Source of the DNA: Hypanus sabinus
Taxonomy: Eukaryota
Direction: 5' to 3'
Assembly: GCF_030144855.1 (NCBI RefSeq)
Contig: NC_082716.1
Span: forward strand, 25,606,001 to 25,670,000
Length of the DNA stretch: 64,000 bases
Shown: in pieces, positions 5,346 through 44,335 of the stretch
Numbering within the stretch: position 1 is the stretch's first letter
How the letters are laid out: every line of letters starts with the position of its first letter
Notes under the pieces: model-generated
Told to the model about the DNA's origin: nothing
The model's database searches: none
The model's input: only the letters and a program-made list of their open reading frames with translations
Program-made: the position numbers and the translations under genes

Positions 5346-5909
5346 ACCAACTGCTGGACATATTCGTTATGACTTACGTCAAAGTTGGCTTCCCTCTCAA
5401 GTCTTCTAATTGGAGCAGAGTGTTTCCAGCAGTTTCTGCTTTGATTATATCATATGAACAGAATATCATATGATAGAATGGGCAAATATTGGCAGAGGGA
5501 GTATATGCAGAACTGAGTGATATATTTTGGTGGGAAGAATATTGAAATTTTGTGAAACTGTTCTACATGGATGCATGAACAAGACATCCTGTGGGAATTG
5601 ATATATAAACTAGGACAGGAAGCAGGAATAATTAATAAAATATTCTGAATTCGGAACTGGAGGAAGTGGAAACAGTGATGGATTTTGTCTTCCTCAATTC
5701 AAAGATTTCTATTGATGTTGTCGGAATTAAACAGGGCTTACTTCTGTGGAGAGCAGCAATGGCAAATTTAGATAAAGTACTGATTCTGGCATTGGAAATT
5801 TTGGCATTGGAGTTTAAGGTGGGGGATATACAGGAGGCAGGGTTTAAGGGTCGGCACAACATTGTGGGCCAAAGGGCCTGTACTGTGTTGTACTATTCTA
5901 TGTTCTATG

Positions 5910-6185
5910 ACATCCATTTAGAACAGAGATGCAGAGAAATTACTTTAGACAGAGGGTGGTAAATCTGTGTAATTTGTTGCCATGAGTGGCTGCGGAGGCC
6001 AAGTCATTGGGTATATTTAAGGCAGAGATAGATAGGTTCTTGATTAGCCAGGGCATCAAAGGGTATGGGGTAAAGGCCAAGAAATGGGGATGACGGGAAG
6101 AATTGGATCAGCCAATGATTGAATGGTGGAGCAGACTCAATGGGCCAAATGGCCTGCTTCTGCTCCTATATCCTATGGTTGTATA
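5910..6185 (+). mobile_element. CR1 LINE 3' end
   Basis: cagagggtggtaaatctgtg (QRVVNL) motif and CR1 3' UTR gggccaaatggcctgcttctgctcctatatc. Confidence 0.85.
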
Positions 6186-12328: not shown

Positions 12329-12569
12329 TGTGTATTTAATATTCAACTAATACTTGAATAATCTTATATATATGTTGATAAAGCATTTTTGTTCACTTAA
12401 ATAATTCATTACGGGTTATGTGTATAGATAAATGATTTGCATTTGTCGTCATGCTAACATGTGATATGTGCATGCCTTGCTTAAAGGGAACTTGAAGTCA
12501 GACCCACATTTTGGAATCTCATGTCTTCATTTGAATTAGTCTAATGTTCTGTAGGTTTAAAACATAATA
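12329..12569 (+). mobile_element. Possible solo LTR (degraded)
   Basis: About 240 bp bounded by tgtgt.../...acataata, with near-identical flanks ataat/ataaa; no internal coding sequence. Confidence 0.3.
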
Positions 12570-12589
12570 ATAAATACAACAATAATGTG

Positions 12590-13535
12590 GTAATGTGGTA
12601 AATTGTATCAGCAAATTTGCTGATGATACAAAGGTTGGAGGTGTAGTGAACAGTGAGGAAGGTTTTCAAAGCTTGCAGAGCGATTTGGACCAGCTGGAAA
12701 AATGGGCTGACAAATTGCAGATGGAGTTTAATGCAGACAAGTGTGAGGTATTGAACTTTGGAAGGACAAACCAAGGTAGGACATACAAGGTAAATGGTAG
12801 GACACTGAGGAGTGCAGTAGAACAGAGGGATCTGGGAATATAGATACATAATTCCCTAGAAGTGGCATCACAGGTAGATAGGGTCATAAAGAGAGCTTTT
12901 GGCACACTGGCCTTTATAATTCAAAGTATTAAGGATAAGAGTTGGAATGTTATTGTGAGGTTGTATAACACATTGGTGAGGCTGAATTTGGAGTATTGTG
13001 TGCAGTTTTGGTTACCTACTTACAGGAAGGATATTAATAAGGTGGAAAGAGTGCAGAGAAGGTTTACAAGAATGTTGCTGGTACTTGAGAAACTGAGTTA
13101 CAGAGAAAGGTTGAATTGCTTAGGACTTTATTCCCTGCAGCGTAGAAGAATGAGGGGAGATTTGATAGAGTTGTATAAAATTATGATGGGTATAGATAGA
13201 GTGAATGCAAGCAGGCTTTTTCCACTGAGGTTAGAGGAGAAAAAACACAGAGGACATGGGTTAAGGGTGAAGGGGTAAAAGTTTAAAGGGAACATTAGGG
13301 GGAGCTTCTTTACACAGAGAGTGGTGGGAGTGTGGAATGAGCTGCCAGTTGAAGTGGTAAATGCGGGCTCACTTTTAACATTTGAGAAAAACCTGGACAG
13401 GTGTATGGATAAGAGGTGTATGGAGGGATATGGGCCAGGTGCAGGTCAGTGGGACTATACAGAAAAATGGTTCAGCACAGCTAAAAAGGGCCAAAAGGTC
13501 CTTTTCTGTGCTGTAATGTTCTATGGTTCTATAGC
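12590..13535 (+). mobile_element. CR1 LINE, 5'-truncated
   Basis: ISKFADDTKVGG, QMEFNADKCEV, LVRLNLEYCVQFW and RRRMRGDLIE motifs; tail gttctatggttctat. Confidence 0.95.
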
Positions 13536-13709
13536 TCTAATAAATACGATGAAGAGTGAAGGTGCAAGTACTGAAGTGGAATCTGAAGTAGTACTAAAAG
13601 AATACTAAGCTGACAATAACAGAATAACAGAGAGAAAGAGAATGTGACGGCACCACTGGGAAAGGGTGAATAAGAGGTAATTAGTTCAGAAATCTGTTGG
13701 CAGTGAGGA

Positions 13710-23454: not shown

Positions 23455-24700
23455 TTCAAAGTAGAAAGAAAATCTTTTTCTGTGCACATACTTAGCAAAT
23501 TTATAGAGCAGTAACTGTAAACTGTAAACATCAGGAGCTATAAGCTGTAAACAAACTGTGCAAATGAAGATATAAAGAAATAGCAATAAATAATGAGCAT
23601 GAAATAAAAATACACCAGAGTCCTTAAATGAGTGTAGTTATCCCCTTTTGAACCTGGTGGTGTGAGTCCTGAGGCACCTGCACCTTCTATCTGATGGCAG
23701 CAGTGAGAAAAGAGCATGGCCTGGGTGGTGAGGATCTTTGATGATGGATGCTGCCCAGCAATTTAAAGTTACTGACCCTCTCCAACTCTCATCCTCCAAT
23801 GACTACTGGCTTATGGACCTCTAGTTTACCTCTACTGAAGCCTACAAGCCTTTTCTTGGTCTTATTAAAATTGAGTGAGAGGTTGTTGTTATTACACCAC
23901 TCAGTCAAACTTCCAATCTCTTTCCTGCATGCTGATTCATCGCCCCTTTTGATACAGCCCACAACGGTGGTGTCGTCAGCAAACTTGTAAATGGAATTGG
24001 AGCTGTACTTTGCCACACAGTCATAGGGGTAAAGCAGGTAGAGCGGAGAGCTAAGTCCACATCCCTGCAGTAGTCCTTTGCTGATGGAGTTTGTGGAGGA
24101 GATGTTTTTGCCAATCTGAACTGTCTGGGGTCTGCAAGTGAGGAAATCCAGGATCCAATTGCACAAGGGGGTAGCGAGGCCCAGGTCTTTGAGTTTATTG
24201 ATTAGTTTTGAGGGGATGATGGTGTTAAATGTCAAGCTGTAATCAATAAAGTACATCCAGATGTAAGTATCTTTGCTCTCCAGATGTTCCAGGGCTGTGA
24301 GAAGAGCCAACGAGATACCACTTACTTTAGACCTATTGCTTCAGTAGGCAAACTGGAACAGGTCCAAGTTGCCATTCAGACAGGATTTATATGCTTCAGC
24401 ACTAGCCACTCAAAATACTTAATCACTGTGGATGTAAGTGCCACTGGGTGATCGTCATTTAGACAGGTTATCACACTCTTCTTGGGCGATTGAAGTAGGT
24501 GGGTACCACACACTGCTGGAGCAAAAGGTTGAAGATATCCTACACATCATCTTCAGATACTGAGACCAAAGGGTCACAGGGAGATATGGGGGTGCACAAT
24601 GGTTCCTCCTTCTTCTGTCCCTATGCCCATTTTTATATCAGCCACAAACCCGGCCACAAAGCTATCAATTACATCATTCAAGTCATGTACCTTCTGTGCT
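23455..24700 (-). mobile_element. Rex1/Babar-like LINE (RT core)
   Basis: [53 protein letters not shown]. Confidence 0.9.
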
Positions 24701-26680
24701 TAGACGCATAGAGGCGACATGACCACAAGACAAATCTGTACACTACAGTATTAGTACGCTGAAGACACAAACGGACCAGAGCCCCTGTTTTTCCTTTATA
24801 ATTGATTTTTCATTGAACCTGAATCAAATAGCACACACAATTGGAACACTATCCAATTTGCAGGTACTTCTCTTAATCAAGCATATGCTTTAACCAAATT
24901 AATGGCTTGGTTTAAAGTTGAACTGAGGATTGTCAATAATCTGAGGGTAGAATTAAGAATATTTTATTAGACTAATGCTATATTCATTTTTTCTCCTAGA
25001 GCTAAATGAAAAGCCAGAACATCTCATTGTAATTTCTGGGACAGGTAGAATAAGTGCACCTATTAGACAAATCATACAAAATATCCACTCTGCCCTAACT
25101 TAATTGACATTAATAACTTGGAACATGTCAAAGTCACTCTGTCTTAATATTTCAGATCATTCTGTCACTCTGTCATTTGAACATGAGCTTTAATATTAGG
25201 ATATGTGAGAATGCAAAATACTGTACGCATTCTTCACTAATTTCTGCAGCATTTACTTCAAAAATTTTGTCAGAGTGATTGTTGATTGGTTGTAGGTCTG
25301 GTGGGTGTGTTTGATGTGTGGGAACATGAATATTTTAATACTGTTAATTGCTTGGAATAAACGAAATATAAAGGTTTCAATAAAGCAATCTTCTTCAGAG
25401 GTGGAGCTTTATATGGTTTAGCAGATTGATCTGCAGTGCAAGTGGAGCGAGCTGTATAATGAAGGATTGGTAGTCCAGGAGATAAATCAGCAATGGATCA
25501 ATCTAAGATACTTGTTAGTTGTGAAAATTGTTGCGCTAATGATATGGAGGACATTCCACTAATCTACCTGACAACTCAGGTGTTCATTGATTAGTCATTC
25601 ACATGTTTGTAATATCTGGCAATTAGACAACACCATAATACCATCTGCTGACCAGAAAAGCCTGCTTCACTTTCTGTCTGACAAGGCAATTAACTATACA
25701 ATAAGGTGAAATGTGCTCAACAGGGCCTGTTTTATTTTGTACAGAACGGTTAATAATGGCAGTTTCAAACTCATACACATTGTGTTCTTTCTGAAATGGA
25801 CCACAATACAATTCCTAGAATCATTTGTATATCAATACATATACACTTGTTCAGGAAAATAATCTATATGTTATTGCAAAACAAGCTGACCGTAGGGTGG
25901 CCTGCACTGTATACAATTAAACAAATGTTGTTGAGAATATATTTTAGAAGCACTTCCAGCTCAATTAGCCAATATTTTATTATTTATAAACTACAGATGG
26001 CAATGTTTTAGAGTAAAGCAAGCTAAATTGTACAAGGATAGATTTCAATGATAATGTTCAAGAACAGATTATTGAATAATGGAACAATGAGCATAGTGGG
26101 TAGGAGGGGGATTTAATGTGCTTGCCACTTAAAAAGAAGCCATGTAAGTATAATTAGTCTCTGTCTGTAACTGATGTGGCAATACTTTTCAGAGGATAGG
26201 CACATTTTATTCATCAGAGGCATCTGAGGCTTTCACTGACTGTTTGATTGTCTTTTATGCTGTAAGCCCTAAAAGCACATTCAATAACCAATGACTGTTG
26301 ATCCACGGATGGGTAGAATATCTGCATAAAGTCCTGATGGATAGATTTTCCTTCATAATTGAAAGAGTTTGAATTTTTCAAGGGCAAGGGCAAATTTTCT
26401 TTGTGGAAAATAATGCCATGAAATTACCATTTAGTTTGTGAAAAGGGAATTGACCTGTGGTGTTAATTCCGCTTCTGTCTGCACAGATACTGCCTGACCT
26501 ATTGAATAAACCCAACATTTCATGAATTAATTTGAGCTATCCAGGGTTTTTCATTTTCGCTTTTCAGTCATGCTTTTTTATATAAATGTCATTCTTAAAA
26601 GGTATCATGTGATATCTTGGGGCATTCTTTCAGTTTGAATCTGAATCAGGTATGGTTGGTATTATATAGTATTTAGTATG

Positions 26681-26739
26681 TAGAAACGTAGAAAACCTAC
26701 AGCACAACACAGGCCCTTCGGCCCGCAAAGCTGTGCCAA
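26681..26739 (-). mobile_element. CR1 3' terminal hairpin and tail (3' part of the chimera)
   Basis: Minus: ttggcacagctttgcgggccgaagggcctgtgttgtgctgtaggttttctacgtttcta. Confidence 0.8.
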
Positions 26740-26749
26740 TCAAAGAGAT

Positions 26750-26801
26750 CGACGAAGGTGGGATGCAAACCCACACATGCAGAGCACAATGGATTAGCAG
26801 T
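26750..26801 (-). pseudogene. tRNA-Ser(GCT) 3' portion, retroposed fragment
   Basis: Minus: actGCTaatccattgtgctctgcatgtgtgggtttgcatcccaccttcgtcg, covering the anticodon loop, long variable arm, T arm and acceptor 3' strand of vertebrate tRNA-Ser(GCT). 5' half absent; no CCA. Confidence 0.85.
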
Positions 26802-27074
26802 ATTTAGTGTTAATGTAAAATTGAATTAAAATTGTAAGCCTGTACAGAATGAGAGAAAACACACTTGGTGTTCATGCTTGGCTAAGGAAATTGTCATGTA
26901 ATATTATCATCTGTTGGATTATGAGTCATAATCCCACATAAGTGTTCACCTTTCAGTTTCATCCTTAGAGATGATACAGTGTACATCTTCTCTAATTCAT
27001 GAAACACTGAGTTTGAGAGAGGACCACAATATTGGTTACAGGGTGTCCATTCAATAAGATCATGATAATGAAAC

Positions 27075-27455
27075 ATGTTTGGGAGTGGGGAGTAGCACCA
27101 GAAAGAAGTGATAGGCAGGTAAGGGCAAGCGGTAAGAAGCCTGACTGGGCAATAAAGGAAGAGGGACGGGGGAGGGAAAAAATTACCAGAAGGAGAAATC
27201 GATGCCAATGCCATCAGGCTGGAGGCTACCAAGATGGAATATGAGATCCTATCAGATTCCTTCTTCTCCAACCTGGCTTCACCTATCAACTTCTAGCTGT
27301 ACTCCTTCCCCTCCTCCCAACTTTTTATTCTGGTGTCTTTCCCCGTCCTTTCCAATCCTGAAGAAGGGGCTTAGCTTGAAACGTCGACTGTTCATTCACT
27401 TCCATAAATAGTGCATGAACTGCTGAGTTCCTCCAGTGTATTGCCTTATTTGTGT
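27075..27455. mobile_element. Inverted Penelope-derived pLTR pair with hammerhead
   Basis: Purine-rich minus arm (27075-27245) abuts a pyrimidine-rich plus arm carrying the hammerhead core and the shared tail. Confidence 0.65.
27353..27390 (+). ncRNA. Minimal type I hammerhead ribozyme motif (best-preserved copy)
   Basis: caatc CTGAAGA aggggcttagctt GAAA CGTC gactg: core CUGANGA, GAAA and GUC intact; stem I 4/5 paired; stem II weak with G-U pairs. Confidence 0.6.
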
Positions 27456-38455: not shown

Positions 38456-38719
38456 GAATATTACATGGATGTGAGTGAACAGCAGAATGATGATGTTGGG
38501 GAGGCTTTATAAATCCAATATTCGCTAGAATCAAGGAATAGAAGGAAAGATATTCTAAAATGCATTTTTGGGAAAATTGATCAGAAAGTTTTCAATCCAA
38601 TCAGAGTGGGTTCATTTTTACATCTCTTTCTGACATTAGGTCTATTTGTTCCAGCTCATTTCTCGGAACTAAATCCAGAAGTGTTGTTGGATTTGGTTCC
38701 AAGAAATGAGCTGGAACAA

Positions 38720-39300
38720 GTTGACACCAGCCTTCATTGAGTGGTCAGTAGAGGAAAGAGTGAGCATGTTCTTGGGTGTCAACATCAAAGAGGATCTACC
38801 CTGAGACCAATATATTGATGCAATCATGGAGAAGGTCCACCAGTGCTGCACCTTAAGAATTTGAGGATGTTTGGTATTTTACCAAGGCTTACAAATTTAT
38901 ACAAATGTACAGTGGAGAGCATTTATCTGATTGCATAACAACCAGGTATGGAAGATTGCAAGAGGCTGCAAAAGGGTGTCGACTCAGCCAGCTCCATCAT
39001 GAGCAGAACCCCCCTCACCATCAAGAACATCTTCAAGAGGTGGTGCCTCATGAAAGCATCATTGTCACCATAGGGTACAATGTCTTCCTTGCTTTCTAAC
39101 TATTCACGAGGAGGAACAGGAGCTTGAAGACCCACACTCAACATTTTAAGAACAGTTTTTTTTCCCTCTGCCATCAGATTTCTGAGTGATTAATGAACAC
39201 TACCTCATTTTACTTTGTTTATACTGTATATTTTTGTAGCTTATTTTACATCTTCCACTTCTGGGATGTGAAAAGCAACAACTTTCACAACATATGTCAA
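38720..39300 (+). mobile_element. Rex1/Babar-like LINE 3' fragment
   Basis: FLGVNIKEDL, DCITTRYG, FKNSFF..AIRFL. Confidence 0.8.
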
Positions 39301-43544: not shown

Positions 43545-44216
43545 AACAACCCTGCACTCAACATCAGTAATACCAAAGGACAGATTGTGGACTTCTGAAA
43601 TGGTAAGATGAGGGAACACACATCAGTCCTCATAGAGGGATCAGAAGTGGAGAGTGTGAGCAACTTCGAGTTCCTGGGTGTTAGTATCTCTGAGCAACTG
43701 TCCTGGTCCCAACATATCGATGCAGCGAGAAAGAAAGCAAGACAGGAGCTACATTTCATTAGGAATTTGAAAAGGGTTGATGTGTCACCTAACACACTCA
43801 CAAATTTCTACAGATTCATCGTGGAGAGCAATCTGACTGGCTGCATCACAATCTGGTATGGGGGTGGGGGGAACGCTACTGCACAGGATCAATGTAAGTG
43901 GCAGAGAGCTGCCAGCTTCATCTTGGGCACTAGATTCCATAATCTCCAAGGTACCTTCAAGGCAGCATCCGTTATTAATGACCTTCACCACCCAGGACCC
44001 GCCCTCTCATTTGTAACTATCAGGAAGGAGGTCCCTCACTACCTCTTTTTTTTTTATTTCTGTTTTGCCCTACTTATTTAACTATTTCATATATACACCA
44101 TACTATATATATATTATAAAATTCAGTTTTTTCTTTGTGTATTGTATTGTGCTGTTGCCGCAAAGTTAACAAATTTCACGACATATGCTGGTGACATTAA
44201 ACCTAATTTTGATTCT
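43545..44216 (+). mobile_element. Rex1/Babar-like LINE 3' fragment
   Basis: FEFLGVSISEQLSWSQHID, LTNFYRFIVESNLTGCITIWYG; terminal gacattaaacct...gattctg. Confidence 0.9.
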
Positions 44217-44335
44217 GCTATCATAAGGTCAAGTTGCTCTTTGCTGACATGTTGTTAAGAATAAGTATCTTTTAATTGTTTTTGCAGTCTATCGGTCTGA
44301 AACAGTTTTGCCTGGTAAAGCAGAAGGAAGATGCC

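Follow-up and report, generated by a model that had tools for sequence, protein, structure and literature searches.

A tRNA-Ser(GCU)/CR1 tail chimera enclosed by a single target-site duplication in the stingray Hypanus sabinus

We describe a 121-nt unit on the minus strand of Hypanus sabinus NC_082716.1, whose anatomy is well supported as a chimera of the back half of a serine tRNA, plausibly in precursor form, and the tail of a CR1-type LINE, laid down in one CR1-driven insertion. Coordinates refer to the window, the whole 64-kb stretch of DNA that was analysed. The unit is formed by three parts inside an exact 10-bp direct repeat, all read on the minus strand: an upstream copy of the target-site duplication (TSD; ACTAAATACT, 26799–26808) is followed by the 3′ 49 nt of tRNA-Ser(GCU) (26750–26798, GCTAATCC...CTTCGTCG, placed with the Rfam tRNA model), a linker ATCTCTT (26743–26749, delimited by alignment with two other CR1 tails, B and H), a 65-nt CR1-type LINE 3′ tail (26678–26742, TGATTGGCACAG...GGGCCGAAGGGCC...TTTCTACGTTTCTACAT, defined by its hairpin, its octamers and the tail alignment) and the downstream TSD copy (ACTAAATACT, 26668–26677). 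The tRNA part and the tail share one orientation and stand only 7–8 nt apart, the 3′ end of the unit is the LINE's own 3′ terminus, and the part derived from a small cellular RNA sits 5′ of the LINE 3′-terminal part, as in LINE-mediated chimeric retropseudogenes. A preliminary description had proposed a TSD-flanked tRNA-Ser(GCT)/CR1 chimera on the minus strand, and sequence reading, the tRNA model and the tail alignment all confirm this anatomy.

Such junctions bear on how SINEs arise. For a SINE mobilised by a stringent LINE, a pol III transcript must first acquire a LINE tail, and this acquisition is usually put down to template jumping (Gilbert & Labuda 1999 and Ohshima & Okada 2005, both cited in PMC4476161), as also by Suh et al. 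2017 (PMC5729268). The explanation has so far been inferred mostly from finished SINE families. A tRNA/CR1 junction with an exact tRNA 3′ end and a U-ended trailer would show that the captured RNA was a nascent pre-tRNA, and also how little of the LINE tail carries over.

The bracketing duplication was assessed by sequence reading, repeat count and random placement. The 10-bp direct repeat given earlier at 26668–26677 and 26799–26808 is exact and lies at both ends of the unit. Its 10-mer, AGTATTTAGT, occurs three times in 64 kb (0.17 expected), two of the three exactly at the element ends, and of 200,000 units of 121 nt placed at random in the window, 41 (~2e-4) had an exact bracket of at least 10 bp with both copies no more than 3 nt off the unit's ends. 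The internal tRNA/CR1 junction carries no duplication and neither sub-part has one of its own; because the internal junction lacks a duplication, one CR1-driven event is strongly supported. The proposal that both parts integrated together thus stands, on a single exact TSD pair with none at the junction, a shared orientation and a LINE 3′ terminus at the end. The last 2–3 nt of the upstream ACTAAATACT copy (ACT) can equally be read as tRNA positions 31–33. ACT is expected just before the anticodon in tRNA-Ser(GCU); U33 is, as far as is known, universal in tRNAs, and C32 is common. Since ACT fits both the repeat and the tRNA, the true 5′ break lies somewhere in tRNA positions 31–34, and this microhomology of 2–3 nt at the 5′ junction may have helped to join the cDNA end. 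The tRNA part had been described as the 3′ 52 nt of tRNA-Ser(GCT): the identity holds, and once ACT, which the repeat can equally claim, is set aside, 49 nt can be assigned without ambiguity.

The tRNA part (26798–26750, minus strand, GCTAATCCATTGTGCTCTGCATGTGTGGGTTTGCATCCCACCTTCGTCG) spans anticodon position 34, the 3′ strand of the anticodon stem, a long variable arm, the T arm, the 3′ strand of the acceptor and the discriminator. With the searched stretch cut at the 5′ end of the element, Rfam aligns it as positions 33–71 of the tRNA model, truncated at the 5′ side (12.2 bits; E = 2.1 in a search of 4227 families, equivalent to ~5e-4 had the tRNA family been searched by itself); the match is seen only with this cut, which permits a truncated Infernal match. 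In the alignment, positions 34–38 read GCU-AA, the variable arm contains an 11-nt insert that makes this a class-II tRNA, the T stem is intact with a perfect 5 bp, and the acceptor strand ends in discriminator G. Together the GCU anticodon and the long variable arm identify tRNA-Ser. The discriminator is followed by ATC with no CCA, so the template was not a mature tRNA. A tRNA-primed LTR origin was considered and rejected, as a primer site would be 18 nt, antisense and CCA-ended, against 49 nt in sense and without CCA here. Across the whole window ARAGORN reports 0 tRNA genes and no complete cloverleaf, and Rfam gives no match at the gathering threshold and no tRNA-like match at E ≤ 10.

The internal pol III promoter is incomplete. 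Box A is absent, the copy beginning at anticodon position 34, and box B, in the T loop, is off consensus (GGTTTGCATCC against GGTTCGAATCC): with UUUGCAU in the loop in place of the model's UUCGAAU, the copy has decayed at two highly conserved positions. Lacking box A, the element itself is unable to found a SINE. The earlier characterization of the locus as a snapshot of SINE birth is therefore overstated for an element that starts at the anticodon, has no box A and departs from box B at two conserved positions; at best it is related to such a birth as a sibling or descendant, itself dead on arrival.

The CR1 tail is modular, with a 5-nt lead, an extended hairpin (26737–26701, minus strand; GGCACAGC...GCGGGCC GAAG GGCCUGU GUUGUGCU), a spacer, two TTTCTACR octamers (TTTCTACG at 26694–26687 and TTTCTACA at 26686–26679) and a final T. 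It folds as a 15-bp interrupted hairpin at −27.4 kcal/mol (z = −4.0), and RNAalifold finds the hairpin common to five tails. The CR1 subfamily behind the tail would be the one whose tail reads GATTGGCACAGCTTTGCGGGCCGAAGGGCC; the motif GGGCCGAAGGGCCTGT occurs six times in the window at up to three mismatches, against 0.21 expected. These sites, read together with two further tails, show that seven other tails in the window share with that of the element a common hairpin/octamer design, giving eight in 64 kb: an extended hairpin around GGCC-NNNN-GGCC, a short spacer and tandem repeats of ~8 nt, which read ATTCTATG/TTCTATG in tail B, TTTCTATG in tail D and TTTCTACR in the element. Tails D and H lie directly 3′ of LINE ORF2 C-terminal coding sequence. 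The former follows a frame-shifted LINE reading frame (29493–28599) that opens with RVT_1 (a Pfam match confirmed for D only), and the latter a reading frame that extends from a FADD-type RT motif at ~12600 as far as the C-terminus of ORF2. From the tail design and from ORF2 C-terminal motifs we provisionally assign the partner LINE to the CR1 clade. The design itself, a stem-loop followed by tandem 8-nt repeats (5′-AUUCURUG-3′), is that of the RT binding site at the CR1 3′ end (PMC5729268).

The nearest relatives of the element's tail are B (5846–5910) and H (13466–13535), with which alignment begins at T-G-A-T-T-GGCACAG. As GA and probably the T before it align with these tails, the linker is 7–8 nt long and the CR1 part 64–65 nt, in place of the 59 nt first reported. 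The claim that the CR1 sequence runs to its own end at the 3′ side of the unit is upheld by the hairpin and octamers shared with the seven other tails. A TTTT run stands 17 nt before the end of the tail.

The linker occupies the place of CCA with 7–8 nt, ATCTCTT/T, in which the T at 26742 can be assigned to either side and three T's form the end. It had been given as 10 nt, atctctttga, instead of CCA; the lack of CCA is correct, and GA, with probably the preceding T, belongs to the sequence that aligns with tails B and H. Upstream of the hairpin in B and H, the alignment reveals no homology to the linker; these two tails share GGGA.TATACAGRA ahead of the point where tail homology starts, and the element is without it. 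Homology to two related tails sets in ~5 nt ahead of the hairpin, which makes a pre-tRNA trailer a likelier source of the linker than CR1 sequence; its T end also matches that expected of a pol III primary transcript. On these sequence features a pre-tRNA origin of the junction is plausible. The linker could also belong to the 3′ UTR of some other CR1 subfamily, one that would read ...ATCTCTTTGATTGGCACAG; we judge a CR1 derivation unlikely, the GATC common with tail D being only a 4-mer and B and H dissimilar upstream of the lead. The suggestion of an unprocessed pre-tRNA template accordingly survives in part: the template was not a mature tRNA, and the linker is T-ended and not recognisably CR1, while the accompanying notion of a one-off switch is about equally likely as a truncated SINE copy. 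If the template was a pre-tRNA, the trailer of a tRNA-Ser(GCT) gene would read ATCTCTTTT...

The junction is most simply explained by a template jump, end to end, from CR1 RNA onto nascent pre-tRNA-Ser. A single CR1-driven target-primed reverse transcription would have inserted a 121-nt cDNA at a staggered break, duplicating ACTAAATACT. As is necessary for CR1, synthesis would have started on an RNA with the CR1 recognition module (hairpin plus octamers) at its end and, after copying 64–65 nt, the enzyme would have switched to the free 3′ terminus of another RNA, the nascent pol III transcript of a tRNA-Ser(GCU) gene, which would have retained a 7–8-nt U-ended trailer (AUCUCUU/U) without CCA. 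Copying of the pre-tRNA would then have gone back as far as the anticodon loop and halted there, after which the new cDNA end would have been attached to the target DNA on the upstream side, possibly via the ACT microhomology. The locus would be the primary product, dead on arrival because box A is absent, and an unsuccessful counterpart of the events from which CR1-mobilised simple SINEs arise. That the element is a primary, one-off product of a CR1 jump onto nascent pre-tRNA-Ser(GCU) we propose tentatively, at a little short of an even chance.

Several features argue for this jump. The exact 10-bp duplication is present at both ends with none at the junction, and random placement yields such a bracket at ~2e-4; the tRNA part extends precisely as far as the discriminator and gives way to T-ended, non-CCA sequence, as an end-to-end jump onto a pol III transcript would produce; and homology to B and H starts sharply at T-G-A-T-T-GGCACAG, their upstream GGGA.TATACAGRA being absent. 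The tail retains the full conserved hairpin and octamers of RT-bearing LINE copies in the same window. Pol III transcripts tend to stop at TTTT, which a pol II LINE transcript tolerates, so the run within the tail fits a pol II LINE transcript and would tend to halt a pol III SINE transcript. Neither the tRNA piece nor the junction recurs in the 64-kb window at up to three mismatches, and no tRNA-like head occurs there (ARAGORN; Rfam E ≤ 10). Precedent exists for CR1 with tRNA (PMC5729268) and for stringent LINEs generally (PMC4476161). Against a one-off event stands the architecture itself: a tRNA part, a minimal LINE recognition tail and a flanking duplication are exactly what a simple SINE consists of, and SINE copies far outnumber one-off chimeras in genomes. 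The CR1 part is trimmed almost exactly to the functional module, a fit more readily explained by selection on a SINE master than by a jump at a random point, the linker could come from the 3′ UTR of another CR1 subfamily, and uniqueness is a statement about 64 kb only. For the fully specified account, in which CR1 RT switched from its own RNA to a nascent pre-tRNA-Ser that was still unprocessed, entering at its oligo-U 3′ end, and this locus is the primary product, our confidence is a shade lower and clearly under one half.

The main rival, which we regard as a real possibility, also below an even chance, holds that the element is a 5′-truncated copy of a low- to middle-copy simple SINE, composed of a tRNA-Ser(GCU) head with trailer, no body and a CR1 tail. 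Here the junction would have arisen once, in a master, and the locus would be a secondary CR1-mobilised copy whose RT stopped in the anticodon loop. TguSINE1/PittSINE offers the same architecture, in which a CR1 hairpin and an 8-bp microsatellite follow immediately on a tRNA head (PMC5729268), and according to PMC3747384 cartilaginous fishes have several tRNA-derived SINEs paired with CR1-type LINEs. The LINE-derived tail with recognition hairpin and terminal repeats is present as in CR1-tailed tRNA SINEs and trimmed to the recognition module, the flanking duplication is in place, and the base rate favours SINE copies, which are far more numerous than chimeras. What speaks for the one-off jump instead is the single occurrence of element and tRNA-like head in 64 kb, the TTTT run, which would hamper pol III transcripts, and a tRNA part that stays near the tRNA consensus up to the discriminator where SINE heads are usually more diverged. 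To this the junction-spanning ORF (26633–26803, minus strand) adds very weak evidence: a protein word search, whose power here is very low, returned no candidates. On balance, a one-off template switch and a truncated Ser-tRNA SINE copy are about equally likely. The two remaining accounts dispense with a jump altogether. Fusion might have occurred at the DNA level, the element then deriving by retroposition from one read-through transcript, made by pol III or pol II at a locus where a short, 5′-truncated CR1 tail had earlier inserted in the T-run downstream of a tRNA-Ser(GCT) gene. Only three T's end the linker, as if an insertion had interrupted the terminator, and CR1 tails are dense, with eight in 64 kb; this nonetheless demands that a CR1 landed precisely within a tRNA terminator and that a second event followed, an unsupported coincidence, and we hold the account improbable. 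Least credible, and in our estimate very improbable, are two independent adjacent insertions, of a tRNA retropseudogene fragment and a short CR1 fragment, with the flanking repeat arising by chance: nothing specific favours them beyond the occurrence of abutting CR1 copies in the window (for example B/C at ~5910–5915), and they sit poorly with an exact 10-bp repeat at the outer ends only (~2e-4 by random placement), with parts that lack duplications of their own and with their shared orientation at 7–8 nt.

The concept of tRNA–CR1 fusion is already published, and the element is a further instance of a predicted kind: Suh et al. 2017 proposed tRNA–CR1 chimeras made by CR1 RT template switching as the origin of passerine SINEs (PMC5729268). 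Like the element, TguSINE1/PittSINE has a tRNA-derived 5′ part joined to a CR1 tail of RT-binding hairpin and 8-nt microsatellite, a TSD flanking the unit and a proposed origin by CR1 RT template switch onto tRNA (PMC5729268). The element differs in being from a stingray, in containing only the 3′ half of a tRNA, here Ser(GCU), without box A, in its trailer-like linker, in its single copy in the 64-kb window and in its octamer, TTTCTACR against their ATTCTRTG (PMC5729268). It also resembles U6/L1-type chimeras (Buzdin et al. 2002–2003, as cited in PMC4476161), where a small pol III RNA that is 3′-complete at the junction lies 5′ of a LINE 3′ end, one TSD pair brackets both parts and an RT template jump is the explanation; the driver there is the relaxed, poly(A)-dependent L1, here a stringent-type CR1. 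Primate tRNA/L1 chimeras (21 loci; bioRxiv 10.1101/2025.02.02.635956) are mostly antisense 5′ halves attributed to twin priming, whereas the element is a sense-orientation 3′ half with trailer. Mammalian pre-tRNA or 'tailless' tRNA retropseudogenes (Schmitz et al. 2004, as cited in PMC3747384 and PMC4476161) likewise have a precursor tRNA as RT template, which implies recruitment of the RNA in the nucleus; they have no LINE part and are usually 3′-truncated, whereas the element is 5′-truncated with a LINE tail. Among cartilaginous-fish SINEs, PMC3747384 lists HE1 (a V-SINE with partner LINE HER1), SacSINE1 (a DeuSINE with a CR1-4_DR-like tail) and SINE2-1_CM (with a CR1-2_CM tail), which share with the element a tRNA-derived head and a CR1-type LINE tail. 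They are set apart by a conserved V or Deu central domain between head and tail, where the tRNA 3′ end of the element lies 7–8 nt from the tail. A search of the literature found no stingray or Ser-headed CR1 SINE.

Were the locus a primary jump, it would directly preserve, in fossil form, the initial step that has long been postulated for how SINEs of stringent-type LINEs come about, and would place CR1 reverse transcription in contact with La-stage pol III transcripts in the nucleus. If instead it belongs to a family, a body-less, Ser-headed SINE would be added to batoid repeat libraries. One-off or family alike, the gain is incremental, not conceptual.

The element lies in window-unique DNA (25668–27270) between two separate L2-type LINE remnants; nesting within these neighbours was considered and rejected on that placement. 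The window is strongly CpG-depleted (observed/expected 0.22), and the element retains five CpGs. Compared with vertebrate tRNA-Ser(GCU), the tRNA part presumably differs at 5 of 49 nt, 3 of these being CpG to TpG. The remaining CpGs, these presumed differences and the intact duplications together suggest a middle-aged rather than a recent insertion. The flanking ORF 26894–27289 (minus strand) has no homologue in a protein word search.

Eight CR1-type hairpin tails of at least three subfamilies occur in the 64 kb, which makes the region dense in CR1 insertions. At 5832–6185, tail B ends at 5910 and a 5′-truncated CR1 copy of another subfamily (C) starts ~5 nt later, a tail-to-head pile-up of CR1 insertions. 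CR1 copy H (~12578–13537, plus strand) has a candidate 10-bp TSD, TAATAAATAC, at 12568–12577 and 13538–13547, which has the 7-mer TAAATAC in common with the TSD ACTAAATACT of the tRNA/CR1 element; judged from these two cases only, TAAATAC may hint at a CR1 target-site preference. A near-perfect inverted-repeat hairpin at 38632–38735 gives a sub-threshold mir-133 match (44.8 bits; the gathering score is 55.5), and other miRNA models match it too, on both strands. As its sequence contains no miR-133-like mature arm, it is probably a transposon-derived palindrome.

The two neighbouring L2-type LINE copies (28422–27600 and 24546–23541, minus strand) are decayed and separate, with RVT_1 fragments and an HPGH..FSLLPSGRRY-type C-terminus, and the former has an internal deletion. 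The best matches of the L2-type RT fragment 23792–24340 (minus strand) are at most 62% identical, the nearest named being from Pristis pectinata and none from its own species. A locus in GCA_977065575.1 with ~66% identity to the L2-type fragment at the RT is without CR1 hairpin tails. A third L2-type 3′ end lies at 43608–44220 (plus strand), with a match to ALKBH8_N (PF09004).
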